From NCBI RefSeq assembly GCF_004010195.1, contig NC_057735.1, forward strand, positions 7,499,237 to 7,556,006: a stretch of DNA of 56,770 nt. Direction: 5' to 3'. The notes beneath the pieces are model-generated. The model had not been told where the DNA came from. It did no database searches and saw only the letters and a program-made list of their open reading frames with translations. The translations under genes and the position numbers were made by a program. The DNA comes from Chiloscyllium plagiosum (taxonomy: Eukaryota). Positions 6,226-50,543 of the stretch are shown here, in pieces. Positions within the stretch are counted from its first letter, which is position 1; each line of letters begins with the position of its first letter.

Positions 6226-6546
6226 TTTCAGGTGCATTGTCAGCAGAAAAGAAAGTAGCAGGAATTGTGGGAAGAGCGATTACAATAAATTGTTCTTATG
6301 ACAAACAGTACCAGCAAAATATGAAATACTGGTGTCATGGTTGGACTAATCAATGTACATATGTGGTGAGAACAGGTGATCCAGAGGGACAGCAAGGAAG
6401 AATGTCAATTAAAGATAACAAGGCACAAGGAGTATTTATTGTTACAATGGAAAACCTTCACAGGGAAGATGCAGGATGGTACAGCTGTGGTATTGATCGA
6501 CCTGGACTTGATTTAAAGTTTGCCTTACCGCTACATGTGTCTTATA
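6226..6546 (+). CDS. Gene 1 exon: CD300/pIgR-like V-set Ig domain
   Basis: Acceptor cccag at 6225 (an in-frame alternative tttcag at 6231 also exists). ITINCSY...KYWC-x6-C...GRMSIKD...F.VTMENL..EDAGWYSCG is the CD300/pIgR/TREM-type V domain with a second disulfide. Phase-1 donor A|GTATGA. Confidence 0.93.
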
Positions 6547-6550
6547 GTAT

Positions 6551-6879
6551 GAGCTGGAAATGTGTTGCTGGAAAAGCGCAGCAGGTCAGGCAGCATCCAG
6601 GGAACTGGAGAATCGACGTTTCGGGCATAAGCCCTTCTTCAGGAATGGGGAAGCCGGAAGATGAGGCGTTCTTCCTCCAACCGTCGTTTTGTTGTGGTCT
6701 GACGATGGAGGAGTCCAAAGACCTGCATATCCTTGGTGGAGTGGGAGGGGGAGTTGAAATGTTGAGCTACAGGGTGGTTGGGTTGGTTGGTCCGGGTGTC
6801 CCAGAGGTGTTCTCTGAAACGCTCCGCAAGTAGCCGGCCTGTCTCCCCAATATAGAGGAGGCCACATCGGGTGCACATC
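6551..6879 (-). mobile_element. Penelope-like element fragment (GIY-YIG endonuclease 3' part plus terminal repeat)
   Basis: Minus-strand CTRCGLLYIGETGRLLAERFREH...HFN; same family as 55013-56770. Confidence 0.88.
6611..6646 (-). ncRNA. Minimal type I hammerhead ribozyme motif (Penelope-associated)
   Basis: Minus strand ATTC-CTGAAGA-A-GGGC-TTAT-GCCC-GAAA-CGTC-GATT: CUGANGA core, stem II, GAAA, palindromic ACGU stem III, GUC site. Confidence 0.7.
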
Positions 6880-8364
6880 TGGCTTACACATACCTCCTGA
6901 CCCACACCAATGTGATTGAGCCTTAACTAACTTTAAAATACTCTAGACCCTCATTAATTGCTGGCCCGGCTAGCAATGCCGATACTCATGAATGAAGAAA
7001 ACAAACATAGGACCTGAGGTACAGGAGGAGGCCATTCAGCCCATTGAGCCTGCTCCACCTTTCAATTTGAACATAAAATATAGGACATCATCAGAACAGG
7101 CCCTGCAGCCCACCATGCCTGTGCAGACTATGATACCATTCTGAACTAATCCTATCCACCTATATATGGTCCATATTCCTCTATTCCCTGTTTGTTCATG
7201 AGTCTGCCTAAATGCCTCTTAAACTTGGCTAACCTATTTACTTCTACTACTCTCCTGGCAGTGTGTTATTTCAGCTGCTGATCACCTCAATATCACCTTG
7301 TCACACTAACTTTGTTACTTTGATCAATCAATTTCAGTCTTAAACAGATAGAAAACTGTGTCTCCATTGCCTCTATAGGCCCCCATCACAGCTCAATGTT
7401 AAAGAGCCTCCCATCTTATCCTGAGATTAGCAGGAGAAACATATTATCTGCATCCAGCCTGTCACACTCTGTCATAAGTTTCAATAAGGCCACCCCTTAA
7501 CTTTCAAAATTCCTAGGAATGCAGACACAGCTTCCTTGCATCATAATTCCACTATCCCAGGAATTAATCTGATGAGCTCCTGTTGCACTCTCTATAAAGC
7601 AAGTACATTCTTTCTGGAAAGGAAACCAAACTGTGCCCAAGCCGATATGCTGTATACAATTTGCTTAACTTCAGGCTATTGATAAATACATTCCATGGGA
7701 ATGAAATCACCACAGTTTGCTCCCTCTGTACTTGGTTCAATGTCATTAATATTAATAGTTGCAAATAGTCAGAGTATTGAACAGGAAATGTTAAATTTTG
7801 AGAAAATGTTAAAAATGTCATTAACATATTTAGTCGGTTAAGAGATAGAACTACAGTCAGACATCACGTGTTGAACTGTGTGTGTTATGATCTGCCTGTA
7901 CTGCATGCAAAACAATACTTTTCACTTTACCTCGGTACACATGACAATAATAAATCAAATCAAATCATATCAGATCTTTGTTAGATATCACACAATTAAA
8001 TGCTTGCATTCAGGCTAAGGCTGGTGAATTATAAATACAAAAGCAGTGAGTCTCAATTTATTACATATTACACAAATTCTCAGAAAATGATAAAGTTGGA
8101 ATTAATCCAAATGTTGGGAGCTCAGCATGGTTCATAGGCTGCCTAGTATGCTGGATGATACACATAAAAAAACAATCTATCAGGTCAGTATAAAATAATT
8201 CAACTCTACGAGTGAACTAAATTTTTGTTCTGCACTCTCTTAATCTATAACTTAAGGATAAATGAAATGAGATGCATTCATCCCATGGAAACAGTGCATT
8301 TCATGAGACTGAATATCAGTGAGAAGAACAAAATGTTGTGACTGTTGCTCCTGCATCTCATCTG

Positions 8365-9300
8365 CCATTCCTCTGTTTCCCTGTTATAAATTCTCCAGAT
8401 GATCTTCAAAGGATTCCATGTTTACTTTAGCTACTCTCTTAATATTCATGCATCTGTAGAAGCTCTTGATGTTAGATTTTATATTTCTTACTAATTTCAT
8501 TTCATTATCAATTTTCTCCCTCTTTAATAGATTTATAGTCACTTGCTGTTTCCTAAAATAATTTCCAATCACCTGGTCTGTCACTAGTTTCTGCTACTTT
8601 GTATGCCTTCATCTTTGATTGGGTACTCTCCTTGGCAACCTTTGTTCATCCTTCTCACCAAGTCTGTCTTTTTGACTGGAATAAACAATTACTGAGGGTT
8701 ATGAAATATCTGCGTAAATGTCTGCCATTGCTCTTCCACTGACTTTCCCTTTGTCTGTTTCCCAAACTGCATTAAACAATGTTTTCTCATACCTCTATAA
8801 TTGCCTCTAAGCCGAGGACACTGGTTTGAGACCCAAGGTGCTCGCCCTCAAATTGAATTTGAAATTCTATCATGTTGTGATTGCTAGCCTCTAGGGCAAT
8901 ATTAATTATTAGTTATTTTAATAACCCTAGGACATTACACATTATTAGATCTGTAAAAGGTGTTTCCTGGTTGATTCTGCAATGTATTACATGAAGAAAC
9001 AAATCCTGTGTACCTTACAAATTCATCTTCCATGTTAACTCTCTCCACTGCCCAGAAAAGATACAGACTAGAATTACCCATGACAATTATAATGCTCTTC
9101 ATACACACCTCCATTACTTCTAAATTTATACTTTGCCCCATAATGATACAACTCTTTGTGCCGATAAATGACTCCCATCCATGAATTCTCTCTCTTGCTA
9201 TTCCTTATTTCAACCAAAATGAATTCCTCATCATGACCTATTGTGCCTCCATTACTACTGACCACCACATAAACCTCTTGACTGTGGTACAAAGACAACA
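8365..9300 (-). mobile_element. Degraded CR1 LINE ORF2 fragment (endonuclease to linker)
   Basis: MGVIYR, IIIVMG, and KLVRNIKSNIKSFYRCMNIKRVAKVNM motifs typical of CR1. Confidence 0.75.
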
Positions 9301-9958
9301 ATGGAAACTGCTTCAGAACCACTACAAATTCTGTTCTTGTCACTGTGCCTGAGGGCTATGTGATGGAAGGGCTCATAATTGAGGTGGCAGCAGAGCACTG
9401 AGCTATTGTGAATGTGTTAGCTTAGTTGGCTGGATGATGGATTTGCAATTCAGTAATAATGGCAACAGTGTGGGTTCAATTCCTGTATGAACTGAAGCTA
9501 CATGAAGGGGCTGCCTTGTCAACTTAGCTTGTTGCCTGAGCTGTGGTGACACTCAGATCAAACTCACCGTCAGTCATCTCATTCTGGTGAGTTTACCTTT
9601 ACCCACTGCCCATACTTCTAGACAGAATGGAAAATCCAGCTCATTAATGAGCAGGTTGTTGCTGCAATTAAATACTGTTAAAGTATACCAATTCTATCTT
9701 ATACTGAGAAAAATTATTGGCACTGAATCTCACATTGACCTATTTTCAGTATTTTTGCTGTTGTCCTGTTCAGTTCCTCAACTTATACTGGTCTTGAGAG
9801 TTCAGGCTTCTGGAAGGATGGCACAATATCGAGATGGAGAAGGTTTGGTGAAATTCCAACATGTCAGGCACTGGCTGAGGTAGACAAGTACTGCGAATCC
9901 ATGAGCATTACCTTTCTAGATATTCAACGAGTATTTAAATGTTTGTTTCTTTTCACAG

Positions 9959-10273
9959 AATCGGTATCTGTTCCAGTAATTTCATTTTCACCTTCATTAA
10001 ATACCCCGTGCTCAATGTCAGCCACCTGTGAATCTGACCAAGGATCGCTCCCCATTCGGTACACATGGTATGAACAGTATTCATCTGAAAACTCAAAGGT
10101 CTCTGACACCAATAAACTGGATCTACATTGTCAATTGTTCACAAAGAATAATCATAAATATCACTGCACAGCCTCAAATCTTCAGGGAATGAATTCCAGT
10201 GAAACGGTTTACGTGTTAGTCACCCACAACTCAGATGGGATCTGCAGTTATGTGGCACAAATCCACAACAGTA
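9959..10273 (+). CDS. Gene 1 exon: C2-type (FcR-like) Ig domain
   Basis: Acceptor ttttcacag, donor A|GTAAGT, phase 1/1. Motifs VSVPVI, TCES.QGSLPI.YTWY, YHCTASN...S. Paralogous exon at 50232. Confidence 0.9.
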
Positions 10274-10977
10274 GTAAGTAATACTTTAAACAAACAGCAT
10301 GATAATGATTTTTTTTTAATCAAAGTTTATCCAACAGATTGTAGTTCAAATTCCCTCAGACATTCATAAACTATAACTGGTCAAATTTACCCTATTTATT
10401 TTCTCAAGATTTAGAAACAGGGACATTGTTGTATGTTTCATTAGAAATGGAGGAGAATATTCCAAAGAAATGCTTCAACATTGGAGTAACTTCCATAATC
10501 CCATGAAGTTAAAAATGGTGAAATCTTTAAAAATGGCTTGGCCTGTTTCACACAAGTGGAATTCTGAAATGTAACCTCCAGCTGTTGTGATGAATTTAGA
10601 GGGCAATGGAGATAGGGTGAGAGATTGAGCCAAGCTGGGTAGCTTTTTCGGGAGCCAGTATAAATCTGATGGGCTGAATGGCATCCTTCTGTACTGTCAA
10701 ATTTGATCATTTTATAACAGGTTTTGATAAAGTAAACTTGAGTTGTTTCCATTCACCAGTCAGTGAGCAATTGATCTGCATGAAGTGAATATCATCACCA
10801 AAACGAGATAGAGAAGTGCATAGGATTTTATGATTGCAAGTAATATGTCCAACTAGAATGGAATCTGTTCTTTCGTCATGATCTGCTACAGATGCAGTTA
10901 GAAGACTTTTACCTTCAGCAGAGTACTTGCAACTGATGAGGCAACACTTATGTTAGCTCCTATAACATAATAATTGA

Positions 10978-13027: not shown

Positions 13028-13207
13028 GGAGAAAGTGAGGACTGCAGATGCTGGAGATCAGAGCTGAAAATGTGTTGCTGGAAAAGCGCAGCAGGTCAGG
13101 CAGCATCCAAGGAACAGGAGAATCGATGTTTCGGGCATAAGCCCTTCTTCAGGAATTCCTGAAGAAGGGCTTATGCCCAAAACGTCGATTCTCCTGTTCC
13201 TTGGATG
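13028..13207. mobile_element. Fold-back Penelope-derived mini-element
   Basis: About 52-bp inverted arms centred on CAGGAATTCCTG; 16-bp TSD TGTTATCCTTTGTTTG (13012-13027, 13206-13221). Confidence 0.85.
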
Positions 13208-13978
13208 TTATCCTTTGTTTGTCATCCTTAAATGCACACAACTGGAATAATCCCACCACCACATCAATAATATCCTAACCAGAATAAAGCTCACTAAAAA
13301 AGAGGAGAACAACAGCAGACTCCCTTTTCTGGACATATTAGTGGAATGCACACCCTACTGGTGATCTCCAAACCAGTGTGTACAGAATGAACACCCATAC
13401 AGACCAGATTATAGTTTCAAGGCAATCTTTCTTCCCCAACCAACAGCATGCAAAAACTGATTATCTGGTGATTTATATCATTGCTTTTTGTAATATAATA
13501 TGTGTACCAATTGGTTTCCATCTTTCTTTACAACACATCCATGACTCTACTTCAGAAAAAATTATTGGTGATGTTTTATCTTCACCATGAGAAGATTCTC
13601 TGAAAGGTGTAACTCAGATCTCCCATAGGGGATGACTGTTTTCATGTTGTTTGAGTCAAAAGTTAGTTCATGCTGTCTTTTGTCTAATCCATAAATATTT
13701 TGACTTGAGTTGGTCAGGTGACTCCTCTGACCATAGTTAAATCAATATTTTGTCCCATTAATAGAAAGAATCAGCTAATGAATACTCTGGTATGAACTGC
13801 CAAAGAAAATCAAAGATCAATATCAATATTATATATCACATGACAAGGGAAATTACATAAAGATTAAACCATTATCCACCCCAAAAAAGCCCCTGGGATC
13901 CATTTGGGAATAGACCTCTCTTGATTGACTGCAACTCAGAATCAGAAGAAATTAAATATTTTCCCCATTTCTCAATAG

Positions 13979-14084
13979 GATTTGAATTAAGTTGTGAAGT
14001 TTCTCCAACAATATCTCCAACAACATCAACCATATCAACAACAACTTCAACCACATTTTCAAGACCTGTGTCTGTCAGCAAAAG
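13979..14084 (+). CDS. Gene 1 exon: Cys plus mucin-like Ser/Thr/Pro stalk (FELSCEVSPTISPTTSTISTTTSTTFSRPVSVSK)
   Basis: Acceptor ttctcaatag phase 1, donor AG|GTACAA phase 2. Keeps frame between the C2 and TM exons. Confidence 0.82.
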
Positions 14085-14374: not shown

Positions 14375-16610
14375 GAACAAACAACAATGCAGCACAGGAA
14401 CAGGTCCTTTTGCCCTCCAAGCCTGTATTGACACATTTTGCCCTTCTATACTAGAACTGCTTTCACATATCCCTACATTCTGTTCCCATTCATGTATTTG
14501 TCCAGGTGCTTCTTGAATGCTGCTATTGTGTTTGCTTCCACCACCTCCTCTGGCAGCGTGTTCTAGGGATTCACCACCCTTTGTCTGAAAAACTTGCCTC
14601 GTCCATCTCTTTTAAACCCCTGTCCTCAAACCTTGAACCTGTGTCCCCTTGTAATTGACCCCTCATAATTGACCCCTCCACCCTGGGGAAAAAGCATCAT
14701 ACCTTCCACTCAGTCCATGTCATTCACAATCTTAGATACTTCTTATCAGGTCGCCCTTAAACTCCTTCACTCCAGTGAAAACAAACCCAGTCTATCCAAC
14801 CTTTCTTCATGACTTAAATCTCCCATACTCGGCAACATCCTGATAAAACTTTTCTGTACCCTCTCCAAAGCATCGACGTCCTTCCGGTAGTGTGGTGACC
14901 AGAACAGCACACAATATTCCAAGTGTGGTTGAACTAAGGTTCTATAAAGCTCCAGCATCACTCGTTTATCCTTATTCTCAATGCCCCTTCCAATGATGGC
15001 AAGCATGCCATCGACCTTTTTTACCACCTTATCTACCTGATCGGCCACCTTCAGTGATCTGTGGAACTGCATGCTCAGATCCCTCTGCATTTCAATACTC
15101 TTAAGGATTATGCCATTCGCTATATATCTTTGACCTGTACATGACTTTCTAAAATGCATCACTTTACATTTGTCTGGATGAAACTCCATCTACATTTTTT
15201 CTTCTCGTGCCTCCAACTGATCTTTATCCCACTGTATTCTCTGACAATCCTCCTCACTATATCCACAACTCCACCAATCTTTGTATCATCTGAAAACCTA
15301 CTAAGACCAGCTACATTTTCCTCCAAATCACTTATGTAGACCTCAAACAGCAGAGGCCCCAGCACTGGTCCCTGTGGAACACCACTAGTCACAACCCTCC
15401 AATCCAAAATGTATCCTTCCACCACTACCCTCTGTCTCCTATGATTAAGCCAGTTTTGTATCCATCTTGCCAGCTTACCACCAATACTATGTGACTTCAC
15501 GTTTTGTACCAATGTGCCTTGAGGGATCTTGTCAAAGGCTTTACTGCAATCCATGTAGACAACATCAACTGCTTTTCCCTCATTGATCAACTTCATTACA
15601 TCACATCCTCAAAAACTCAGTCAAGTTAGTGAGGCACTAAACCATGCTGTATATCACTAATAAGTGCACTTGCTTCTAATTGCATGTACTATAGATCTTG
15701 TCCCTGAGAACCTTTTCCAATAATTTCCCCACCACGTTAGATTTGAGACTCACAGGCCTGTAATTTCCTGGATTATCCCTGCTACCCTTTTTTAAACAAT
15801 GGGACAACTTTGGCTGTTCTCCAGTCCTTTGGGAATTCCCATGTGTCTAAAGAGGATACGGAGATGCCTGTCAATGCTCCAGCAATTTGTTCTCTTGCCT
15901 CCTTCAATATTCTGTGATAGCTCCCATCAGGACCCAGGTACATATTTGCCTTAATACTTCTTAAGAAATGCAATACCTCTTCTTTTTTAATAGCAAATTG
16001 GATTAGAGACTTGATACTACCTTCCCTGAGATCATCCTCCACCAATTCTTTCTCTTTGGTGAATACTAAGTATTCATTTAGGACCCCACCTACCTCTTTT
16101 GCCCTGAGTGAGCCAACCCTTTCCCTGGCTACCTTATTGCTTTTTATATAGGTATAAAAGTCATTGGGATTTTCCTTAATTCTGTTTGCTAACGACTTTT
16201 CATGACCCCTTTTAGCCCTTCTCATTTCTTGTTTAAGTTTTTTTCCTACTTTCTTTATATACTTCAAGGGCTTCATCAGTTCCTATCCTCCTAGAACTTA
16301 TGTATGCTTCCCTTTTCTTTTTGACCAAGGTCATTCCACAGTTCACGTAACTTGCCACAGCTATTCTTCATTCATGCAGGAACATGTCGCTCCTGAACTT
16401 CTTTCAACTGCCGTTTCAAATAGTCCCACATCTGATGTGGATTTACCCTCAAACAGCCACGTCCAATTAACATTCTTCAGTTCCTGCTTAATATTGTTGT
16501 AGTTCATCTTCCCCAAATTTAACACCTTTGCCTGAGGACTGCTGTAAACCCTATACATGAGTATCTAAAAACTCATAGTATTATGATCACCACTCCTGAA
16601 ATGCTCCCTC
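14375..16610 (-). mobile_element. CR1 LINE, 5'-truncated and frameshifted
   Basis: Minus ORFs 16361-16558, 15782-16276, 15159-15596 and 14767-15189 give consecutive CR1 ORF2 pieces. Confidence 0.92.
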
Positions 16611-17959: not shown

Positions 17960-18050
17960 CTACACCACCTACAGTGTTATACGTTGGGTGCTCTTTGCTG
18001 TGCTGGTGATTTGTGCTGTTTCAGTGACAATGTTTACAAGAAAATCTAAG
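17960..18050 (+). CDS. Gene 1 exon: transmembrane segment (YTTYSVIRWVLFAVLVICAVSVTMFTRKSK)
   Basis: Long polypyrimidine acceptor ...ctcag phase 2, donor AAG|GTAGGG phase 0. Hydrophobic span followed by basic RKSK. Exons 1-5 total 870 nt in frame. Confidence 0.88.
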
Positions 18051-36453: not shown

Positions 36454-36484
<31 letters not shown>

Positions 36485-38786
36485 CCTCTGCTACTCACCT
36501 CCCACCAAGGCTCATGTTCCACTATTTTCACTGTTGCCTGCAGGATCTGCCTTTAGTCATTGTCCCTCATCCAAACCTCTGGCACCACTATCCCTGAACA
36601 TCCTCTGCTTTGCCTGCTCACTCACTTGGGATAACTTCCTACGTGCACAAAAAACAATTCAGCTGTGTCATCATCTTTCATCTTCTTTAATAGGGCAGAA
36701 AGAGTCAAGACGAGAGCTGGGCTGTCAGATATTCAGCTTCTCAGCCCTTAAATGAATGCAATCCTAACTGTGACCTCCCAAGTGGCTGACAGACTGAGTT
36801 CAAAACTCTAGTCTGGTATCAGAGACTGGTCTTGACTTCCTGTGCTGTGAAATACCTGAGAGAAGGTTATCCCTCTTGATTTGATTGAGACCAACTGACA
36901 ATTATGATGAGCTTCCAAACTTTGTGCCTGTGCTAAATGGTGAGGCATGACACAAGTAATATGAGCCTGGTACCTCGGACTGAGAGAATAGTATGCAAAA
37001 AGATAAGGCATGGAGAGGCAAGGCGGGTGTTCTAAGTATGCAGGTAGGCTTGGAACGAGTGCAAACAAACAGGCCAGATATACAGCCTGGTCTAGTCCAT
37101 GAGCTGGTGAATGTCCCTGGCTTTACAATGTCCTTACTACAACGTTATAATGATGTTTGCTATTGCAATGTTAAAGTCCAGATCTGTTCTGTAAATGGTT
37201 TGGAGATGTATCATGAGGGTTCTTAAAGGCTAGCACCAGTTGTAATGCCAATGTCCGTCGATGTGGGGCTGAAGCATATGACGTACACAGTGACATGTTG
37301 GTGCCCAGTATTCAATATGAAGGCCTTTGGAGCAACTGAAGAGCATGATTTAGCCAGTTAGCTGCTCTGATTTCCATTTCGAGAATTCTCGATGGCTAGC
37401 TGAAGCTAAATATTGATGAGGTCAGTTGTGACATTAATGAGGCATTTAACAAGTTATAATCCTCCTTAATTGGTGTATCATCACTTCTTGTTGAGAAACA
37501 TGCCTCACTATAGATGCATAAAACATATAGCAAGTTTTTCTCGATGCAGAAATGGGCCTTACTGGAATTCTCGCCCCATTCTGACACAAAATTCACCATA
37601 TCCCATGTCATCTACAATTCTATAAGATTCTGCTCACTGTGTTTATTATCTTCAAAGACTTTCTTCAAGTCCCTTTACGTTCCCTTGTTGAACGCCAATG
37701 GAAAATGCTGTCCTTGCCTTGTCCAGCCTACACAAAACTTCAGACCCACAGCAATGTTGTTGACAATAAGGTCGTCCGTGCAGTTGGTGCTGGATCATAA
37801 ATGCTGGTCTGGCCAATGACACCCACAACCTATAAAGGAATAAAGAAAAACTTCCTTCCTATGTTCTTGTTGCATGAACTATGTGGTTTTCCCTCTCCAA
37901 ATCCTACTGCAGTTGAGGGCGTTGTAGAAGAATATGAAAAGTTCATAAAGATGTGTGCCAGTAACACCACCCACTATGGTGAACCACATGGACCTGACAG
38001 TGAACAGTTTAGAATCTCGAAGATGTTACAGCCTAACATCCAGGCCCTATGCATTGTCTCTGTAACAATGTTTCTCATAATAAGAGATAAGGTAGGGTAG
38101 TAGGTTGCTGTTCAATGGTTTGGTGTGGGCTCAATGGGCCAAATGGCCTGCTTCCACACTGTTATAACAATGTGACTTGTTGCTAATAGGGATTAATAGT
38201 AGAAAATGTCCATTTAAAAGATACTTAGATAGGTACATGAATAGGAAAAGTTTGGAGGGAAATGGGCTACGAGCAAGCAGGTAGGACTAGTTTAGTTTGG
38301 GATTATGTTCGGCATGGACTGGTTGGACCGAAGAGTCTGTTTTTGAGTTGTATGACTATGACCTTTGGGCTGCTCTCTCATGAGAGAAAGAGAACTGGTG
38401 GTTGATTTAACCTGAGGATCACCATGCTTTGGGCAAGGGGAAAGGTCAAAGAGGCCTTCATGGTGTCTGTAGCCAGTGTGGGATTTAAACCCGAAGAGTT
38501 GGCATCACTCTACATACAAACCAACCATCCAGCCAACTAAGCTAACCAACTGCCTAATAGGCAGCAAGCTACCTCTTGTTCAATGCGACAGTTGTTTCTA
38601 GTTCGACCAGTGAGTGGTTTTTCTCTGTCATGCTGGGCCAAACAGTCATTGTAGTTTCCTAGGAAGTGGAAGCCAGATGCAAACCTCCCACAGAGTGAGG
38701 TGTAATCTTGGTTTTGCTAAACACGTGATAGCAGCCAACAATGGAGAGAGAGTAAAATATTTCACCTATTCCACAGTGCTGAATGA

Positions 38787-39110
38787 TTAGATTCCCTACA
38801 GTGTGGAAACAGGCCATTTGGCTGAACAAGTCCACACCGACCCTCTGAAGAGTAACCCACCCAGACCCATTTCTCTACATTTACCCCTGACTAATGTACC
38901 TAAAACTATGGGCAATTTAGCATGGCCAATTCACCTGATCTGCACATCCTTGGATTGTGGGAGGTAACTGGAGCACCCGGAGGAAACCCACGCAGACACA
39001 GGGAGAATGTGTAAACTCCACACAGACAGTCGCCTGAGGCTGGAATCAAAGCCGGCTCCCTGGCACTGTGAGACAGCAGTGCTAACAACTGAGCCACCGT
39101 GCCACCCATA
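38787..39110 (-). mobile_element. HE1-type SINE, specific to copy B
   Basis: HE1 head and V-domain; TGAATGA TSD; empty site near 4187-4193. Confidence 0.9.
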
Positions 39111-40399
39111 AATGAATGAGTTGGAAAAAATCTCAAATGTTATTGTTGTTGCCATTATGAAGAAAAGTTCACATTTATGTAGAACCTTTCACAACCTCCA
39201 GAGGTCCCAAAGTACACAAAAGTCATTTATTTATTTGAAGATATGCCATTTTTGTAATGATGCAGAAATGGTCATGAATTTATACAAAGCAAGGTCCCCA
39301 GTCAGGCAGATGAAAATAACCAGATTATCTTTTTTCCTCAGTGATTGTTGGTTGAAGAGTAATTGTTAATGAGCATTTTGTGAAGTATTTAAATTTACAC
39401 CACAGCTACTTTTCCATCAGGAACGTTTCTGTCCACATGATAGGGTAAATATGGGGTTGCATCATATGCACGTGATATGGGTTGCAGTGGCTGGCTGGAA
39501 AGCCAGTGAGACCCTAATAATATCTCTTTTCCAGAGGCCTGTTGCATCTTGAAACAATCAGGCACTCAACAGATGATAACGAGGCCATCCCCTACAATCA
39601 GGGACCTAGTGATGGACAGACTTCCCACCAAAGGCAGCTGGTCTTCAGGACCTGAATGCCATTGGAAGATAGTGAGCATAGAGCCAGAAACAGGTAGGTC
39701 ACGGTGTAAGAGGTCTCATGGGGCAGAGGTCATTGGGAAAGTGGCGTGAAGAAGGATTTGTTGGCAGCAAGGAAGGGTTGAAGGCTTTCAGCAGGTAATC
39801 CCAGCAACCAAGCCGACTGATGTAAAATCCCTTAGTCAGGCAACTGAGGGGCTTTGGACAGGGATCCCCCTGGGAACCCACAATCAAACATGGCTGAGTT
39901 TAGATATCATACTGGACATACAGCTCCCACTGACTTTATAACAATGGCAGCAAGATGAAGCCATGAATTGATCTCAGTTCAGGTCAGAGTGGGAAGCCTT
40001 CCAATAAAGGCTCTGAACAATATGGAAATGCCGTCTCCACCACCCCCTTCTCCAGCCAATTAAATGGCTCTTATCACAAACGTGGCACAATTGGTAGTAT
40101 ACCATGTGATACACATGTAATCTGAGGTAACCCTCTTCGTTGATGACTAAAGAAATTGAGGGTTTGGTTAAGAAAAAGAAGGAAGCATATATCAGGTATA
40201 AACAGGATAGATCGAGTGAATCCTTAGAAGAGTATAAAGGCAGAAGGAGTATACTTAAGAGGGAAATCAGGAGGGCAAAAAGGGGACATGAGATAGCTTT
40301 GGCAAATAGAATTAAGGAGAATCCAAAGGGTTTTTACAAATATATTAAGGACAAAAGGGTAACTAGGGAGAGAATAGGGCCCCTCAAAGATCAGCAAGG

Positions 40400-40692
40400 N
40401 NNNNNNNNNNNNNNNNNNNNNNNNNNNNNNNNNNNNNNNNNNNNNNNNNNNNNNNNNNNNNNNNNNNNNNNNNNNNNNNNNNNNNNNNNNNNNNNNNNNN
40501 NNNNNNNNNNNNNNNNNNNNNNNNNNNNNNNNNNNNNNNNNNNNNNNNNNNNNNNNNNNNNNNNNNNNNNNNNNNNNNNNNNNNNNNNNNNNNNNNNNNN
40601 NNNNNNNNNNNNNNNNNNNNNNNNNNNNNNNNNNNNNNNNNNNNNNNNNNNNNNNNNNNNNNNNNNNNNNNNNNNNNNNNNNNNNNNNNNNN
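40400..40692. other. Assembly gap (293 N)
   Basis: Run of N. Confidence 1.
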
Positions 40693-41830
40693 CTGATTAG
40701 AGATTGTCAACATGGCTTTGTGCGTGGGAAATCATGTCTCACAAACTTGATTGAGTTTTTTGAAGAAGTAACAAAGAAGATTGATGAGGGCAGAGCAGTA
40801 GATGTGATCTATATGGACTTCAGTAAAGCATTCGACAAGGTTCCCCATGGAAGACTGATTAGCAAGGTTAGTTCTCATGGAATACAGGGAGAAATAACCA
40901 TTTGGATACAGAACTGGCTGAAAGGTAGAAGACAGAGGGTGGTGGTGGAGGGTTGTTTTTCAGACTGGAGGCCTGTGACCAGTGGCGTGCTACAAGGATC
41001 AGTGCTGGGCCCTTTACTTTTTGTCATTTACATAAATGATTTGGATACAAGCATAAGAGGTACAGTCAGTAAGTTTGCAGAAGACACCAAAATTGGAGGT
41101 GTAGTGGACAGCGAAGAGGGTCACCTCAGATTACAACAGGATCTGGACCAGATGGGCCAATGGGCTGAGTAGTGGCAGATGGAGTTTAATTCAGATAAAT
41201 GCGAGGTGCTGCATTTGGGAAAGCAAATATTAACAGGACTTATACTTAATGGTAAGGTCAGGAGTGTTGCTGAACAAAGAAACCTTGGAGTGCAGGTTCA
41301 TAGCTCCTTGAAAGTGGAGTCGCAGGTAGACAGGATAGTGAAGGCGGCGTTTGGTATGCTTTCCTTTATTGGTCAGAGTATTGAGTACAGGAGTTGGGAG
41401 CTCATGTTGCGGCTATACAGTACATTGGTTCGGCCACTGTTGGAATATTGCATGCAATTCTGGTCTCCTTCCTATCAGAAAGATGTTGTGAAACTTGAAA
41501 GGGTTCTGAAAAGATTTACAAGGATGTTGCCAGGGTTGGAGGATTTGAACTACAGGGAGAGGCTGAACAGGCTGGGGCTGTTTTCTCTGGAGCGTCAAAG
41601 GTGAGGGGTGACCTTATAGAGATTTACAAAATTATGAGGGGCATGGATAGGATAAATTGACAAAGTCTTTTCCCTGGGGTCGTGGAGTCCAGAACTAGAG
41701 GGCATAGGTTTAGGGTGAGAGGGGAAAGATATAAAAGAGACCTAAGGGGCACCTTTTTCACGCAGAGGGTGGTACGTGTATGGAATGAGCTGCCAGAGGA
41801 TGTGGTGGAGGCTGGTACAATTGCAACATT

Positions 41831-42014
41831 TCTCCGGTTTCCTCCCACAGTCCAAAGATGTGCAAGTTAGGTGAATTGGCCATGCTAAATTGCCCGTAGT
41901 GTTAGGTAAAGGGGTAAATGTAGCGGTATGGGTGGGTTACGCTTCGGCGGGTCGGTGTGGACTTGTTGCGCCGAAGGGCCTGTTTCCACACTGTAAGTAA
42001 TCTAATCTAATCTA
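41831..42014 (+). mobile_element. 5'-truncated HE1 SINE inside the CR1 3' end
   Basis: ctccggtttcctcccacagtccaaagatgtgc...(aatct)3 replaces about 60 nt present in the CR1 copy at 43125-43188. Confidence 0.87.
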
Positions 42015-42112
42015 AAGGTGTGACTAGATTGGGTTGGGATATCTGGTCGGCATGGACAGGTTGGACCAAAGGGTCTGTTTCCATGCTGTACATCTCTATG
42101 ACTCTATGACTC

Positions 42113-43280
42113 TGCACCTCCAATTTTGGTGTCATCTGCAAACTTACTAATTGTATTTCTTATGCTCACATCCAAATCATTTATGTAAATGACAAAAAGT
42201 CGACCACCCAGTGCTGATCCCTGTGGCACTCCACTGGTCACAGGACTCCAGTCTGAAAAACAACCCTCCACCACCACCCTCTGCCTTCTACCTTTGAGCC
42301 AGTCCTGTATCCAAATGGCTAGCTTTCCCTGTATTCCATGAAACCTAACCTTGCTAATCAGTCTCCCATGGAGAACCCTTGTCGAATGCCCTACTGAAGT
42401 CCATATAGATCACATCTACTGTTCTGCCCTCATCAATCCTCTTTGTTACTTCTTCATGGGCTAAGAAGTGGCAGATGGAGTTTAATTCAGATAAATGCGA
42501 GGTGCTGCATTTTGGGAAAACAAATCTTAGCAGGACTTATACACTTAATGGTAGGGTCCTAGGGAATGTTGCTGAACAAAGAGACCTTGGACTGCAGGTT
42601 CATAGCTCCTTGAAAGTGGAGTAGCAGGTTGATAGGATAGTGTTGAAGACATTTGGTATGCTTTCCTTTATTGGTCAGAGTATTGAGTACAGGAGTTGGG
42701 TGGTCATTTTGCGGCTGTACAGGATATTGGTTAGGCCACTGTTGGAATATTGCGTGCAATTCTGGTCTCCTTCCTATCGGAAAGATGTTGTGAAACTTGA
42801 AAGGGTTCAGAAAAGATTTACAAGGATGTTGCCAGGGTTGGAGGATTTGAGCTGCAGGGAGAGGCTGAACAGGTTGGGGCTGTTTTCCCTGGAGTGTCGG
42901 AGGCCGAAGGGTGACCTTATAGAGGTTTACAAAATTATGAGGGGCATAGATAGGAATAATAGAAATAATGGGGTCGGGGAGTCCACAACGAGAAGGCATA
43001 GGTTTAGGGTGAGAGGGGAAAGATGTAAAAGAGACCTAAGGGGCAACTTTTTCACGCAGAGTGTGGTGCGTGTATGGAATGAGCTGCCAGAGGAAGTGGT
43101 GGAGGCTGGTACAATTGCAACATTTAAGAGGCATCTGGATGGGTATATGAGTAAGAAGGGTTTGGAGGGATATGGGCCGGGTGCTGGCAGGTGGGAGTAG
43201 ATTGGGTTGGGATATCTGGTCGGCAGGGACGGGTTGGACCGAAGGGTCTGGTTCCATGCTGTACATCTCTATGACTCTAC
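42113..43280 (+). mobile_element. CR1 LINE with 5' inversion (42113-42455 minus, 42456-43280 plus)
   Basis: The minus segment is the reverse complement of CR1 40760-41100; the plus segment resumes shortly downstream at WAKKWQMEF. Confidence 0.9.
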
Positions 43281-44191
43281 GACATGTAGTGCCCTCCTTC
43301 GGCACTGAACTGGAATGACAACTGAGATCTACAGCTGTGGGTAGAATTTGATCAAACTACGTATTAACACAGACATGAGGGTCCCAATGCAAAGCCACAG
43401 CTGGCACCACCACCATCATAACTAAGGAACATACTTTAATCCTTAGGACGTAGGTGGGGCTGTTACCAGCTGAGGTTTGAGTTGTAAGAAGTTTGAATCT
43501 TGACCTAATCCCATCACCAACCCACCCAATTCTCACTTTAGTGGAAAATGTGAGACCCGGAAAGTGTTTGACAGAAGTGCCAGGGAAGCGGCTCGGCTTT
43601 TAAGTGTGTTAATTATCCCAAATTGTTCCTTCAAATTCTCCTATTGGCTGAGAAACATGACAATTCAAGGAAGGTTAGGGACTGAGCTATCAGGGGTATT
43701 GTACATTTCCTCTTCATTGATGGATCCTGTGTCATTCCTTGGCCAGCAGCGACCAATCTGAAAGTCCCTTCTCTATCCTTCTGATCTCCCCCAACCTCAT
43801 ATAGCCACCAACATCTCAACCCAAGAAGCAGGTTTCTACTTTCCAACCCCACGATCAACCTGCAAACACAAGACATTATCCATGGAATTAAACCCCACAG
43901 AATGTGACTGAATCCCAATTTCCAGATTCCCTGCTCTTGATTACTGCAGTTGGATCAAGAAAGTTATCAATCTCCAAATGCTCCCACGAGACAAAACCAT
44001 AGGATCTGTCACATTCTGAGGCTGTGACAGGACACTATACTAATATTTCCTTTCAACACAAACTAGAAGAAATTCATCAGTGTTAATAGATGTACGTGAG
44101 AGATTCCCTATCAAAAGCACTAACTCTTATTAAAATGTTTTGTTTTGAAATATTTCTTTCCTGTTCAACTTATGAAATGTTGTCTACCCAG

Positions 44192-44512
44192 TTTCAGGTG
44201 CATTGTCAGCGGAAAAGAAAGTAGCAGGAATTGTGGGAAGAGCGATTACAATAAATTGTTCTTATGACAAACAGTACCAGCAAAACATGAAATACTGGTG
44301 TCATGGTTGGACTAATCAATGTACATATGTGGTGAGAACAAATGATCCAGAGGGACAGCAAGGAAGAATGTCAATTAAAGATAACAAGGCACAAGGAGTA
44401 TTTATTGTTACAATGGAAAACCTTCACAGGGAAGATGCAGGATGGTACAGCTGTGGTATTGATCGACCTGGACTTGATTTAAAGTTTGCCTTAATGCTAC
44501 AAGTATCTTATG
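44192..44512 (+). CDS. Gene 2 exon: CD300/pIgR-like V-set Ig domain
   Basis: 321 nt with 9 differences from the gene 1 V exon by manual alignment; canonical donor G|GTATGT. Confidence 0.94.
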
Positions 44513-44884
44513 GTATGTGTCTCACTGATTTTCTTCCTTACTCTCAACTGAAATGTTTGATGAATGTTTCACAGTTTTGAATCCTACTGCGACAGATGAT
44601 GAAACTTGAATTCAAAACGTGATCGGAAATTAAAATCTAGTCACTGGTGTCCATGTAATTATTGTAGATTGCTGTAAAAACCTATTTGGTTCACTGATGT
44701 CTTTTATGGAAGGAAATCTGCCATCCGTACCCAGTCTGGCTTACACATACCTCCAGACCCACACCAATGTGATTGAGCCTTAACTAACTTTAAAATAGTC
44801 TCGACCCTCAGTTCAAGGGCAATAAATGCTGGCCCAGCTATCAATGCCAATACTCATGAATGAAGAAAACAAACATAGGACCTA

Positions 44885-45199
44885 GGGCGGCACGGTGGCA
44901 CAGTGGTTAGCACTGCTGCCTCACAGCGCCAGAGACCTGGGTTCAATTCCCGCCTCAGGCGACTGACTGTGTGGAGTTTGCACGTTCTCCCCGTGTCTGC
45001 GTGGGTTTCCTCCGGGTGCTCCGGTTTCCTCCCACAGTCCAAAGATGTGCAGGTCAGGTGAATTGGCCATGCTAAATTGCCCGTAGTGTTAGGTAAGGGG
45101 TAAATGTAGGGGTATGGGTGGGTTGCGCTTCGGTGGGGCGGTGTGGACTTGTTGGGCCAAAGGGCCTGTTTCCACACTGTAAGTAATCTAATCTAATCT
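44885..45199 (+). mobile_element. Full-length young HE1-type SINE, specific to copy B
   Basis: Intact A box TGGCACAGTGG and B box GGTTCAATTCC, V-domain, (aatct)n tail; empty site at 7010-7022. Confidence 0.94.
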
Positions 45200-46069
45200 T
45201 AGGTACAGGAGGAGGCCTTTCAGCCCATTGCGCCTGCTCCACCTTTCAATTTGAACATAAAATATAGAATATCACACCATGCCTGTGCAGACTATGATAC
45301 CATTCTGAACTAATCCTATCTACCTATATATGGTCCATAATCCTCTGCTCCCTGTTTGTTCATGTGTCTGCCTAAATGCATCTTAAACTTGGCTAACCTA
45401 TTTACTTCTACTAGTCTGACAGTGCATTATTACGACTGATCATCACCTCAACATTATCATGTCACAGTATTCTCTGTCACCTTGATCAATCAATTTCAGT
45501 CTTAAACAGACCCAAAACTGAGTCTCCATTTCTCCATTGCCTCTGTAGTCACCCCCCACCACCACAGCTCAATGTTAAATAACCTCCCCTCTTATCCTGA
45601 GATTAGGCCCTGTGGTCTTACACTCAATAGCAGGAGAAATATATTATCTGCATCCAAGCCTGTCACACCCTGTCATAAGTTTCAATAAGGCCACCTCTTA
45701 ACTTTCAAAATTCCTAGGAATGTAGACCCAGCTTCCTCAAATCTCTCCTTGCATCATAATTCCACTATCCCAGGAATTAATCTGATAAGCTCCTGTTGCA
45801 CTCTCTGTGAAGCAAGTACATCCTTTCTGGAAAGGAAACCAAACTGTGCACAATCCGGTATGCTGTATACAATTTGCTTAACTTCAGGCTATTGATAAAT
45901 ACATTCCATGGGAATGAAATCACCACAGTTTGCTCCCTCTGTACTTGGTTCAATGTCATTAATATTAATAGCTACAAATAGTCAGAGTATTGAACAGGAA
46001 ATGTTAATTTTCTAGGAAAAGTAAACAAATCATTAACATATTTAGTAGGCTCTCTGATATGATCAACTA

Positions 46070-46275
46070 GGAGAAAGTGAGGACTGCAGATGCTGGAGAT
46101 CAGAGCCGAAAAATTATTGCTGGAAAAGCGCAGCAGGTCAGGCAGCATCCAAGGAGCAGGAGAATCGACGTTTCGGGCATAAGCCTGAAGAAGGGCTTCT
46201 GCCCGAAACGTCAATTCTCCTGCTCCTTGGATGCCGCCTGACCTGCTGCGCTTTTCCAGCAACACATTTTTCATC
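46070..46275. mobile_element. Fold-back Penelope-derived mini-element, specific to copy B
   Basis: Inverted arms; TCTCTGATATGAT repeated at 46051 and 46274. Confidence 0.85.
46185..46213 (+). ncRNA. Hammerhead core on the sense strand of gene 2 intron 2
   Basis: CTGAAGA-A-GGGC-TTCT-GCCC-GAAA-CGTC; stem I disrupted by the fold-back junction. Confidence 0.5.
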
Positions 46276-48828
46276 TCTGATATGATGCATGACAGGCATA
46301 ATTAATAAGAGATATAACGACAGTCAGACATCATGTGTTGAACCCTGTGTGTTATGTTCTGCTTGTACTGCATGCAAAACAATACTTTTCACTTTACCTC
46401 GGTACATGTGACAATAATAAGTCAAGTCAAATGATATCAGATCATTGTTAGATAGCATGTAATTAAATGTTTGCATTCAGGCTAAGGCTAATGGATTATA
46501 AATACAAAAGCAGTGAGTCTCTAAAGCAGTGATTCTCAGAAAATGATAAAGTTGGAATTCGTCCAAATGTTGGGAGCTCAGCATGGTTCATAGACTGCCT
46601 AGTATGCTGGATGATACACATAATCAAACAAATAATCAGGTCAGCCTAAATAATTCAACTCTACAAGTGAACTAAACTTCTGTTCTGCACTCTCTTAACC
46701 TACAACTTGAGGTATTCCAGATCAAAGGATAAATGAAATGAGATGCATTCATCCCATGGAATCAATGCATTTCATGAGAATGAATATCATAGAGAAAAAC
46801 AAAATGTCACAACCTTTGCTCTTGCATCTCCCAGTTGAAATTGATATGAGAATCTGGGGTGTGTGGTCACTGTTTTAACAGTAAAATAACTCCCTTTATT
46901 CATTGTTTAGTCATTGGGCTGTATTTTCCTGACCTGGTGGAGCATTTGGACCAGGTTGTGACTGGAAAAGTGATACCGATAAAGCTCCTTAACATCTTCC
47001 TGCCTGTTAGGAGAATTTCTCTGACGCAGGATGGCTGGATACAGGCAGGCTGTCAGCTAGGCCAAGAGACATTTTGCAGAGGTGATCGCATTGTCCCCCT
47101 TCCTCCAATGTAACCGCCTTGGAGGTGAACTATTGAAGGCCATTGAAGCTGGAGGCAGTAGTGAAGGAGCCATAAGGATGGACTGTCTCAACTGCATACA
47201 GTACCAATTTAGGGCAGAGTATTCCCCACAATGTTGGCCAAACTAACTGTTGGAGAGCTTGGAGCAATGATAACAATTGTAGAAGTTAGTGTCAGGATGT
47301 TCAAAGGTTTGTACTTGCTTTAACAAAATGATGGCATCAATGAGCAGTCAGAGAGCGATGCTCTCTCAGAGAGCAGCAACAGTTTGAAGAAACCAACAAA
47401 GCTGATATGGCTAAATATTTCTGAAGAAATCAGTATTAAACAACACTTCTGGAAAGATAGAAATAGCTGTCAAAACCTGACCAGATGAAGAAAGCTGAGT
47501 GTAGTCGCATATTTACCTACATTCCACTGTACACATGAGGAGATAAATAACATCCCAGAAACAGTGACATATCAGGAAAGGGGAGGGGTGAGCTCAGGAA
47601 TTCACAATAATCAGAGAATCAGGAATGAGTAAATTATTGGACCTGCAGGTGACAAGTGCCAAAGTCTTGAACAGACTTTAGTCTTGGGTTAATCCAGTTA
47701 AGTTTCTGGTGAATTCTTTCTGAATATATAATGGGTGGATTATTCAAAAATGACATTGTTATTGATTGTTTAGGAACAATGGTTGGACTATCTCTTTTTG
47801 GAGAGGATTGTGCCTGACATTAACATGGAGGAAGTTGCTTCACTTACCAGCATAAACCTGAATGTCCGGGGGTGGCTGTATACAGATATGCATGTTTCAT
47901 TAACTGAGGAGTTATGGATGGAACTGAAAATGTGTGACAATGCATGTTCAGAGAAACTGGTTCCTTCTGAATTTGTGTGCTTGCAGGATTTATGCTCACC
48001 ATGCACCAACGTGGAGTGCTGGACTTCAATGGTCCAGTTAGACAACTGAAGGCTCACACTTCACAAGTGAATAAAGGCAGCCAATGGTGGAAGGTGCAGC
48101 TGTGTAGACTCTGTGGCAGAGAGTAAATCTGTATAGCTGGCCATGGGCTTCTGAAACAATGGATGAAAAGATTAATCATTGAGAAGCAGCAGATAATCTG
48201 TGATGTGTTGACAGGATTGCCAAACTCATTGTCCATAACTGTACACAGATTGGAGGAGTCCAGATCCTCGGATGCTGCCTGAATTGCTGTGCTCTTCCAG
48301 CACCACTGATCCAGAATCTGGTTTCCAGATCAAGCCTATCTGAAAACAAAAAATGTTGGAACTCACAACAGGTGAGGCAGCATCCATGGAGGGAAAGCAA
48401 GCTAACATTTAGAGTCTAGTTGACTCTTCACTTCAGCTCTGATACGCTTTAATTGGATGGCAAAATATGCTTAAGGAATTGTATGATGTTACATGTTTTG
48501 TTACTTTAGGGACTTGTGTGTATTTTCCAAATGAATGAAGACTGTGACTAGCAAAGCACTCAGGGTCAAGCTCAGAACCTGGAGCATTTCAAAGGCAAAC
48601 TTCCCCTTCGCAAATTAACTCAATTATTTATGAATGTGTCGTAGTGAAGGACCATCAACTGATAATAAGATTGTTGGTGAATCTGGCCCTTTTTGATCTT
48701 GGGCTACTTCTCTCAGAGTTAAGGGTAAAATTTACCAATGCTCATATCTCCAAAAGTCAGGAGAGAGTCAAATAGAATTTTTAAAAAGTCTGCAATCCTG
48801 CTATTTCTTATAAAACCACAGTGTCATT

Positions 48829-49320
48829 GAGTCATAGAGATGTACAGCATGGAAACAGACACTTCGGTCCAACACGTCCATGCCGACCAGATATCCTAAA
48901 TTAATCTAGTCCCATTTGCCAGCACAGACCCCATATCCCTCTAAACCCTTCCTATTCATGTACCCATCCAGATGTCTTTAAAATGTTGTAATTGTACTAG
49001 CCTCCACCACTTCCTCTGGCAGCTAATTCCATACACGCACCACCCTTTGCGCGAAAAAGTTGCCCCTTATTTCCCTTTAAATCTTTCCCCTGTCACCCTA
49101 AACGTATGATCTCTAGTTCAGGACTCCCACAAGTCAGGGAAAAGACCTTGTCTATTTATCCTATCCATGCACCTCATGATTTTAAAAGCCTCTATAATGT
49201 CACCCCTCAGCATTTGATGGTCCAAAGTAAACAGCCCTAGCCAATTCAACCTCTCCCTATAACTCAAACCCTCCAACCCTGGCAACATCCTTGTAAATCT
49301 TTTCTGATCACTTTTGGGTT
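48829..49320 (-). mobile_element. CR1 LINE 3' end
   Basis: gagtcatagagatgtacagcatggaaacagac... same tail as 25940. Confidence 0.88.
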
Positions 49321-50231
49321 TGAGATGATGGAGTATCTCACTCTGGAGAGACAGGTCAGTGATTAAAATTTTCTAATGAGGCTCCATTTCTATTTTTAGG
49401 ATCAATTTGAATTTAATGAATTTAGGCTTTGTTTTCCTTGGTCTTCCAACTGGAGCAGGGAAATACATTTCCAATGATGCTTATGAACTGGGAACAGCGG
49501 GAGTCCAATCTGCCAGTCTCCTCCTAAGCAAAGTTCATGCCATGAGTTACCTTCATCTCAGTTGATTAACATTCATATGATCAACAAAGATCCCATCCAC
49601 CACCCAAAGTGTCCTCACCACCAGCTCCCATTTCACTTTGCCATGATCTATGTTGCCTTCCTCTCATGCTGGTCCAATGTCAGGTGAAAAATGGATTGTA
49701 AAATTCAAAGAAGGTCATTCCATTAAATTTTCTCAACCTTCACCAACCATCTCATTTTCTGATTCTCGCACACCCTCACAACCTCCAATTTCAGATAAAG
49801 TAATCTCTTTCAGCAGCAGTTCACTGAGCTCCAATGCAATTACATTCCTTATTTAAATCTGCAAAACCTGTAACCAATACCTGGTAAATTTTCATTGTAA
49901 TTTTCTGCTCCATTGATCACTGATTTGACTTGATCATATTTGAGAGTAAAATCATTCAGTAGCTTTGAAGGCTGACTGCCTGTTGCCGAAAGAAATTATT
50001 GGCACTGACTTTCACGTTGATTCATCCTCGGCATTTTTGCTCTAATCTGGAGACCTACTCTGCTTTTATCTAATGGTAGTCATTCTAGTTCAGGTTGCTA
50101 GGAGGGTCATGGAGAGTTAAATATGCTGGTGAGATTCCAACAAGAGAAGCCATGGCTAAGCTGTGTAAGATACTGAGCATTTAAGTTTTGGATATTTATG
50201 CAGTACATGAATATTTGTTTCTTTTCCACAG

Positions 50232-50543
50232 AATCCGTGTCGATTCCTGTTCTCAAATTCACTTCACCACCAAATGTCTCATGTTCTGGGGGATCAGTGT
50301 CAATCTCCTGTGAATCTGTCTGGGGATCCCCTCCCATTTACTACAAATGGTATGAAAGCACCTCAGAGATATCTGACACCAATAAATTGGATCTACATTG
50401 TCAATCCTTCAAACAGCAAAATCATCAATATTACTGCACAGCCAGAAATCAGCAGGCAATAAAAGACAGTGAAATGGTTAAAGTATCAGTCATCAACAGA
50501 TCAGTGAACAATTGCAATTATGTGGTAGAGATCAGCAGCATTG
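50232..50543 (+). CDS. Gene 2 exon: C2-type Ig domain (later exons not found in window)
   Basis: Acceptor ttttccacag, donor G|GTAAGT. VSISCES.WGSPPI.YKWY...SDTNKLDLHCQ...YYCTARN. Confidence 0.9.

Follow-up and report, generated by a model that had tools for sequence, protein, structure and literature searches.

A 56,770-nt stretch of the genome of the shark Chiloscyllium plagiosum (contig NC_057735.1; hereafter the window) carries two tandem immune-receptor genes on the + strand, here termed gene 1 and gene 2. On sequence evidence, both belong to the cartilaginous-fish MDIR family, with a V domain of the CD300/pIgR-like type followed by a second, C2-like immunoglobulin (Ig) domain. The two genes present nearly the same V domain on second Ig domains that are strongly diverged. 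As developed below, the V domains are probably near-identical because DNA has been repeatedly copied between the front halves of gene 1 and gene 2.

Gene 1 consists of six exons, all intact and bounded by canonical AG/GT sites, with a coding length of 918 nt or 305 codons. Its first exon (436–472, +), bearing the start codon and leader, comprises 12 codons plus 1 nt and ends in phase 1; it is marked by an ATG, a hydrophobic leader, and the donor CTG/GTGAGT, and 12 of its 12 residues match the leader of P0173, the gene 1 orthologue of Chiloscyllium punctatum. There is no leader exon directly upstream of the V exon, and a phase-1 search places the leader 5.8 kb upstream. Exon 2 (6226–6546, +; 321 nt) encodes the V-set domain (Pfam V-set, E 2e-13; AG/GT sites). 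Exon 3 (9959–10273, +) encodes a second, C2-like Ig domain of a divergent lineage, with weak Pfam matches to Ig_3 and Ig_2 and membership of a clade of gene 1-type (g1-type) domains supported at 100/100; it is 87.6% identical to P0173 and 47% identical to skate MDIR5 (E 5e-27; P0157 in single-exon BLASTP). A Ser/Thr-rich stalk running from phase 1 to phase 2 occupies exon 4 (13979–14084, +), located by tblastn to P0173 (82% over 39 aa) and by its splice sites. Exon 5 (17960–18050, +), recovered by tblastn and family match, encodes the transmembrane (TM) segment with an Arg in the membrane span. Exon 6 (23895–23942, +) supplies the last 15 codons and the stop, with 75% identity to the P0173 tail in addition to its acceptor and stop codon. 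Exons were searched singly. The codon at the V/C2 junction of gene 1 (6546/9959) encodes K; relatives have E at this position. Among 73 matches to P0173 there is no C. plagiosum protein that corresponds to gene 1, which may be unannotated in its own species.

The window holds three intact exons of gene 2, with canonical splice sites that include the exon 3 donor. The leader exon (34870–34906, +), defined by its splice sites and a match to the annotated protein, encodes the same peptide as that of gene 1. The V-set exon (44192–44512, +; 321 nt; Pfam V-set, E 1.5e-13) is 9 nt off that of gene 1 and 100% identical to P0187, an annotated C. plagiosum protein. The second Ig exon (50232–50543, +; Pfam Ig_2, E 7.5e-9) is C2-like and of the typical family type, with 92% identity to the corresponding domain of P0175, the C. 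punctatum orthologue of gene 2. This exon lacks four codons that are present in all of its orthologues.

The contrast between the two halves of these genes is stark. The leader peptides are identical, and a single synonymous nucleotide difference separates the leader exons. The V exons differ at nine of 321 nt (6245, 6320, 6375, 6376, 6528, 6529, 6536, 6539, and 6546), five of which sit in the last 19 nt, and the V domains share 103 of 106 residues, the changes being G/N, P/M, and H/Q, plus the junction codon (K vs. E). Across the second Ig exons, by comparison, 52 of 100 aligned residues are identical, with seven gap columns in two indels. All of this bears out a first-pass annotation of the same DNA, which had reported identical leaders and 321-nt V exons 9 nt apart with three amino-acid changes and an altered junction codon; its manual count for the C2 exons, about 53 of 105 with two indels, stands as to the indels but is replaced by 52 of 100 residues. 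Synonymous divergence (dS) between gene 1 and gene 2 is 0.047 in the V exon versus 0.455 in the second Ig exon, and the ratio of nonsynonymous to synonymous divergence (dN/dS) is 0.42 and 0.76, respectively; the V value indicates a constrained exon. Among 528 pairs of V–C2 units, drawn from the best 150 listed of 2712 family proteins with short domain matches left out, V identity exceeds C2 identity by more in gene 1 and gene 2 than in any other pair (0.97 vs. 0.52), a contrast beyond chance. When the three changes are placed on a structural model of the V domain, they spare the BC and FG loops, which do not differ between the genes; G/N falls in the loop after strand C′, and the other two lie in strand G. 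An unchanged binding face in both receptors is plausible from the model, and the two may share a ligand.

The DNA in which the V exons are embedded extends the likeness well beyond coding sequence. A shared 5′ block, delineated by self-blastn and MAFFT, extends from upstream DNA across the leader, intron 1, and the V exon to a point 1.8 kb into intron 2; it lies at 2–8359 (+) in gene 1 and at 34452–46830 (+) in gene 2, where the copy carries an extra, repeat-rich 3.2-kb insert (40118–43303) that holds an assembly gap. The block is at least 8.36 kb long, its left end being cut by the window start at position 2, and it ends abruptly in intron 2. It reaches far beyond the span considered in the first-pass annotation, taking in the leader exon and the whole of intron 1. 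Sliding identity between the copies ranges from 78% to 99% and collapses at 8359/46830, which gives an exact position to the stop in similarity previously placed near 8360/46830. In total, the copies differ at 830 of 7657 aligned columns, a Kimura two-parameter distance (K2P) of 0.118; the segment 6547–6890 was excluded from these block statistics as non-homologous (replaced). Past the boundary, nothing is alignable between the two genes over 8360–9705, after which sensitive blastn detects an old homology of the 3′ module, pairing 9706–10463 (+) with 49988–50731 at 64.9% over 780 columns.

An assembly gap inside the gene 2 copy raises the question of artefact: the block might be a falsely duplicated or mis-scaffolded haplotype. 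The gap (40400–40692), the only run of N in the window, interrupts a retroelement that has inserted into intron 1 of gene 2; being intronic, it leaves the reading frame unaffected. The sequences on its two sides correspond, with order and orientation preserved, to a single retroelement copy at another place in the window (16119–16328 with 40372–40164, and 14516–15636 with 41830–40735), and the reverse-transcriptase residues map in the correct order, 440–574 to the left of the corresponding point and 612–636 directly after the gap. The flanks within the block are likewise collinear, 1–5212 and 5334–8359 pairing with 34452–40117 and 43304–46830. Furthermore, 830 differences in 7657 columns lie far above the allelic level, the independently assembled C. 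punctatum genome has both genes at adjacent locus tags with the same pattern of similar V and different C2, and Hemiscyllium ocellatum also carries both types. An artefactual origin of the block is highly improbable.

Divergence between gene 1 and gene 2 falls into three tiers. The introns flanking the second Ig exon are the most diverged, with K2P of 0.438 and 0.465. Most of the 5′ block forms a second tier at about 0.14, with the bulk of intron 1 at about 0.15. The third consists of four patches at about 0.03–0.04, one of them over the V exon, which itself has a K2P of 0.029 and is preceded by 476 nt of intron 1 at 0.048. Heterogeneity along the block is pronounced (chi-square 206, 37 df, P 2.5e-25) and persists when non-coding columns alone are considered (P 3.6e-21). 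A two-state hidden Markov model (HMM) recovers four low-divergence segments, all on the + strand: one around the leader exon (226–578; 10 differences in 347 columns), one deep in intron 1 (2095–2643; 16/508), one around the V exon (5718–7249; 51 differences in 1163 aligned columns, 6547–6890 excluded), and one in intron 2 (7414–7794; 14/381). The longest identical run, 151 nt at 6377–6527, lies inside the V exon and was matched by none of 2000 shuffles. As for the two deep-intronic segments, neither 2095–2643 nor 7414–7794 contains a convincing open reading frame, and Rfam and tRNA scans of 1–44900, which include both segments, gave no match. At about 3–4% divergence in a block of about 14%, 2095–2643 and 7414–7794 could be either conversion tracts or conserved regulatory DNA.

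One conceivable account of the V/C2 contrast dispenses with recombination altogether: the whole gene was duplicated, and the second Ig exon of one copy then evolved very fast. Two features of the second Ig domain lend it some colour. The g1-type domains sit on a long branch (0.27–0.33), and the C2 dN/dS of 0.76 suggests relaxed or diversifying evolution of what appears to be the activating copy; moreover, the C2 data do not reject a single clade of hemiscylliid sequences. The introns decide the matter. Free of protein selection, they step in the same way as the exons, from K2P of about 0.12–0.15 before 8359 to 0.44–0.47 around the second Ig exon, and 8360–9705 is unalignable. Purifying selection alone cannot account for this step in intron divergence, and fast evolution of one exon is very unlikely as an explanation. 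The long-branched g1-type domains (gene 1, P0173, and P0251 of H. ocellatum) also lack three residues that are present in all other members.

Separate trees of the V and C2 exons tell two different histories. In a first set of 33 units, a clade of gene 1 plus gene 2 on C2 was not rejected (p 0.288), and orthologues from named species were added for this reason. The second set comprised 36 units from named species, with five hemiscylliid rows, and the third comprised eight rows that included both genes of three hemiscylliid species (C. plagiosum, C. punctatum, and H. ocellatum); units whose domain matches were short had been excluded, and P0202 and P0251 cover only 48 V columns. On C2, the 36-unit tree separates a g1-type clade of gene 1, P0173, and P0202 (100/99) from a gene 2-type (g2-type) pair of gene 2 and P0175 (100/99). 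The eight-row tree likewise yields g1-type and g2-type clades across the three species (100/100 and 100/98). A clade of gene 1 plus gene 2 is now rejected by the C2 data, with p-values from the approximately unbiased (AU) test of 1.6e-42 and 7e-34. On V, the five hemiscylliid exons of the 36-unit tree form one clade (96/91) in which gene 1 and gene 2 are sisters (91/89), and the six of the eight-row tree form one young, unresolved star clade (100/100). Constraining V to orthology in the 36-unit set costs 5.6–12 log-likelihood units (p 0.0546, 0.0498, and 0.0163). The first-pass annotation had suggested building exon trees separately and scanning identity and dS along the genes: the trees are discordant once orthologues are added, and the scans give the collapse at 8359/46830 and a dS of 0.047 in V against 0.455 in C2.

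Individual sites echo the trees. Comparing C. plagiosum with C. punctatum, quartet sites in V are three of the species type and none of the orthology type, versus none and 30 in C2 (Fisher P 1.8e-4). Gene 1 of C. plagiosum carries the g2-type D at V column 90, where the g1-type P0173 and P0251 have A. At columns 67 and 97, both C. punctatum paralogues carry a derived R. Columns 67, 90, and 97 suggest conversion in this sequence comparison. An orthology signal (M vs. T or P) persists at column 101, which lies towards the 3′ end of the exon, the part in which nucleotide differences are concentrated.

These data also bear on a simpler history, in which the block arose once, by unequal crossing-over or by a chimeric duplication with its breakpoint in intron 2, and underwent no conversion thereafter, purifying selection on the exons, the promoter, and enhancers accounting for the low-divergence patches. 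Functional elements, namely the leader/promoter and the V exon, do fall in two of the four low segments; the V exon is constrained, as its dN/dS indicates; and AU tests on V are only borderline. On the other hand, the V dS of 0.047 and the 0.048 of the adjoining 476-nt intron segment are both a third of the bulk of the block (about 0.15), and the remaining two low segments lie deep in introns. The site counts oppose it as well, with V sites by species at 3 to 0 and C2 sites by orthology at 30 to 0, as does the g2-type residue in gene 1 at a position where both its orthologues agree on another. A single event without later conversion is an unlikely history.

At their 3′ ends, the two genes appear to belong to different signalling classes. 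Gene 1 has an Arg in its membrane span, a 20-residue tail after the span, and no immunoreceptor tyrosine-based inhibitory motif (ITIM). The motif around its Arg, Arg-Trp-(Val/Leu)-Leu-Phe, is common to P0094, P0023, P0142, P0029, and P0173, and P0173 likewise combines an Arg in the span with a short tail and no ITIM. ITIMs follow a recognized consensus, and charged TM segments are linked to adaptors with immunoreceptor tyrosine-based activation motifs (ITAMs). From its predicted protein, gene 1 is an activating-type receptor, and by analogy it would signal via an ITAM adaptor; the earlier suggestion that it looks activating holds at this level, given the Arg-bearing TM exon, the short tail without an ITIM, and six intact exons. 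Gene 2, judged by its relatives, has inhibitory receptors with ITIMs as its orthologues in related sharks. P0173 and P0175, the respective C. punctatum counterparts of gene 1 and gene 2 by orthology, are encoded at adjacent locus tags; both types are also present in H. ocellatum (P0251, g1; P0252, g2); and whale shark P0178 and zebra shark P0254 are of the g2 type. P0175 has a neutral TM segment and three ITIM-consensus motifs, P0178 has two ITIM motifs, and P0252 and P0254 align with P0175 and P0178 along the whole tail. Gene 2 of C. plagiosum may therefore have an inhibitory tail, as predicted from its orthologues in these four related species.

Given where the block ends, how divergence is split into three tiers, the conflict between the trees, and the structure of gene 1, the history that we favour, with a probability of roughly 0.7, is one of old paralogues whose 5′ module was replaced later and then re-homogenised in patches, yielding a pair with the same V domain and different signalling ends. 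The neutral divergence of the 3′ module, about 0.45, would date the paralogues themselves. At a divergence of about 0.14, the 5′ module, which runs from the promoter region and leader through intron 1 and the V exon to 1.8 kb into intron 2, would have been replaced by non-allelic recombination ending in intron 2, either as a long-tract conversion or as an unequal crossing-over. Short gene-conversion tracts would afterwards have re-homogenised patches to about 0.03–0.04, probably at about the time when the two Chiloscyllium species separated or later; one such patch takes in the V exon apart from roughly its last 20 nt. How many conversions there were, and in which direction they ran, is something we infer from these patterns. 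The outcome would be the same binding domain on different signalling ends in genes evolving in concert. In its broad form this is what the first-pass annotation had proposed, a 5′ end shared through gene conversion or chimeric duplication, and the step in intron K2P, the discordant trees, and the patchwork of the block all support that proposal.

Several observations pull the other way. Constraint on regulatory DNA could explain part of the low-divergence patches, some of which were chosen after inspection of the profile, although the HMM and chi-square tests are independent of that choice. The sister grouping of gene 1 and gene 2 on V has support of 91/89 in the 36-row tree but 59/75 in the eight-row tree; the orthology constraint on V gives a p-AU of 0.0735 in the eight-row set, which together with 0.0546 and 0.0498 is borderline; and the signal of conversion after speciation comes from only three informative V sites. 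Furthermore, a single clade of all five hemiscylliid rows is not rejected on C2 (p 0.216), and the 3′ modules may therefore stem from a duplication within this shark family instead of from two ancient lineages. Lastly, no stalk, TM, or tail exon of gene 2 turned up in 50544–56770, whether by blastn, by tblastx, by scanning for hydrophobic windows, or by tblastn using P0175 and family tails as queries, and the only C. plagiosum gene 2 product on record, P0187, has no TM segment.

The last point opens a further alternative, which concerns the fate of gene 2 rather than the origin of its V exon. P0187 (XP_043572160.1; 235 aa) is identical to the gene 2 leader, V, and second Ig exons, and then reads through the exon 3 donor to a stop at 50579–50581, 35 nt into intron 3, without a hydrophobic span; the read-through segment (50544–50581, +) is an open frame ending at 50578, to which P0187 aligns. 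In C. plagiosum, gene 2 might accordingly not be an inhibitory partner at all, its 3′ exons having been lost or uncoupled, and its product might be a soluble V–C2 protein, or the gene might be decaying. Were the product soluble, the V domain held in common would belong to a secreted decoy or opsonin accompanying an activating receptor. The early end of P0187 favours such a fate, as do the remaining 6.2 kb of the window, which hold retroelement copies and no downstream exon, and there is precedent in the soluble relatives termed SITR in carp (PMC3031540). However, four related species have full-length orthologues that carry ITIMs, the three exons of gene 2 are intact with canonical splice sites down to the exon 3 donor, gene models often stop early where evidence is thin, and introns of at least 6 kb are already present in these genes. 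Loss of the inhibitory end in C. plagiosum is a doubtful but serious contender, and a membrane-bound inhibitory partner remains the favoured reading of gene 2.

The family to which the pair belongs is large and variously named. A search with the V exon returned 2712 proteins at E ≤0.001, and three family proteins used as queries recovered proteins of sharks and rays as well as skate MDIR 2 and 5. NCBI names for members include “pIgR-like,” “CMRF35-like,” and “Fc receptor-like.” By BLASTP against skate MDIR2 (P0198), the V exon is 51% identical (E 7e-38) and the gene 2 C2 exon 50% (E 4e-34). Among solved structures, the nearest sequences to the V exon are pIgR domains (7jg2_E, E 1.3e-44 over five domains) and CD300 proteins, and for the gene 2 second Ig exon FCRL5 (E 2.3e-32). 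An AlphaFold (AF2) model of the V domain (pLDDT 92) finds its best fold match in CD300lf, at TMq 0.90 and 34% identity, with CD300A and CD300C chains also among the structural matches. Both signalling forms occur in the family: P0094 and P0173 have an Arg TM segment and no ITIM, and P0097, P0175, P0178, and P0186 have a neutral TM segment and two to three ITIMs. Discordance between V and C2 is seen elsewhere in the family and in both directions, with identities of 0.92 (V) and 0.485 (C2) for P0005u2/P0002u2, 0.63 and 0.92 for P0005u1/u2, and 0.74 and 0.96 for P0023u1/u2; P0007 is also among the discordant proteins. Domain-wise mosaic evolution may be general in the family, and some of the long family protein models may be fused tandem genes.

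Several known systems invite comparison. The CD300 family of mammals comprises inhibitory members with ITIMs and activating members with a charged TM segment, and CD300A and CD300C have very similar Ig domains. CD300 offers the best structural match to the shark V domain, but its proteins have a single V domain, to which the shark genes add an FcRL-like second Ig domain. pIgR, whose name reaches the shark proteins as an annotation by similarity, has four to five V-type domains in mammals and two in teleosts, and has no pairing of ITIM and Arg-TM forms. More generally, paired receptors with a common binding domain (KIR, Siglec, CEACAM, and CD300) turn up repeatedly in mammalian innate immunity and are read as traces of arms races with pathogens. 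Conversion-homogenised pairs in mammals and MDIR families with both signalling types are already known. MDIRs are described as multigene families with activating and inhibitory members related to CD300, TREM, FCAR, and pIgR (PMC3031540); the MDIRs of the clearnose skate belong to the same family by sequence, and what the window adds is one defined tandem pair with a homogenised V exon, traced across three shark species. According to PMC5701461 and PMC4042635, Siglec-5/Siglec-14 and Siglec-11/Siglec-16 are, like the shark pair, neighbours, with opposite signalling ends and a ligand-binding part kept near-identical by conversion. In these primate pairs, which belong to another Ig family and ligand class, the converted part is the first exons and identity is very high, whereas the shark pair combines an older 8.4-kb block with younger patches and does not share its second Ig domain. 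CEACAM pairs, mammalian and related by the Ig fold only, are reported to show coevolution of the ligand-binding N domain between activating and inhibitory members (PMC2832619). For cartilaginous fish, a 2014 survey is reported to have found no pIgR or FcRL homologues in sharks (PMC4016189). Of the five terms immune-type receptor, NITR, CD300, pIgR, and KIR, a 2019 review contains NITR alone, as a family of ray-finned fish still to be sought in cartilaginous fish (PMC6795676). Nothing in print was found on conversion of paired receptors in sharks or in MDIRs, in a search that was weak on subscription journals and supplements.

The remainder of the window is rich in repeats. A retroelement with long open frames is present as an inverted pair (55269–55697 and 56332–56770; 89% identity), one frame of which has a weak GIY-YIG match (E 0.0029) under the Pfam cut-off. 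A 225-nt piece at 6651–6875, directly after the gene 1 V exon, is related to this retroelement; its match to 55365–55589 was entertained as a third V exon and rejected as part of the retroelement. Fragments of a reverse transcriptase like that of long interspersed nuclear elements (LINEs) lie at 28636–29192 (−), 15694–16153 (−), and 40693–40767 (+), one of which borders the assembly gap. An interspersed repeat of about 180–220 nt recurs at 13028–13210, 22052–22203, 26946–27168, 46055–46281, 50800–51054, and 55010–55102, several times as an inverted doublet, and one copy lies just 3′ of the gene 2 second Ig exon.

For the biology of these receptors, the broadest interpretation is offered tentatively, its probability being somewhat under even: recurrent conversion, probably running both ways, may have kept the V exons of an activating/inhibitory MDIR pair alike throughout the hemiscylliid radiation, as the second Ig domain and the signalling ends diverged freely, and the inhibitory partner may be turning soluble in C. 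plagiosum. Similarity-based names such as “pIgR-like,” “CMRF35-like,” and “Fc receptor-like” hide one coherent family, and the intact gene 1 seems to be absent from the C. plagiosum proteins on file. The locus gives comparative immunologists a concrete case in a shark, in which the recombination boundary is mapped, the conversion patches are graded, and several species have orthologues; it allows the same mechanism to be tested at the base of the jawed vertebrates. If the interpretation is true, no worked example of a “same bait, opposite signal” receptor pair would lie deeper in phylogeny, and a strategy usually ascribed to pathogens exploiting inhibitory receptors would have been in use already in cartilaginous fish.

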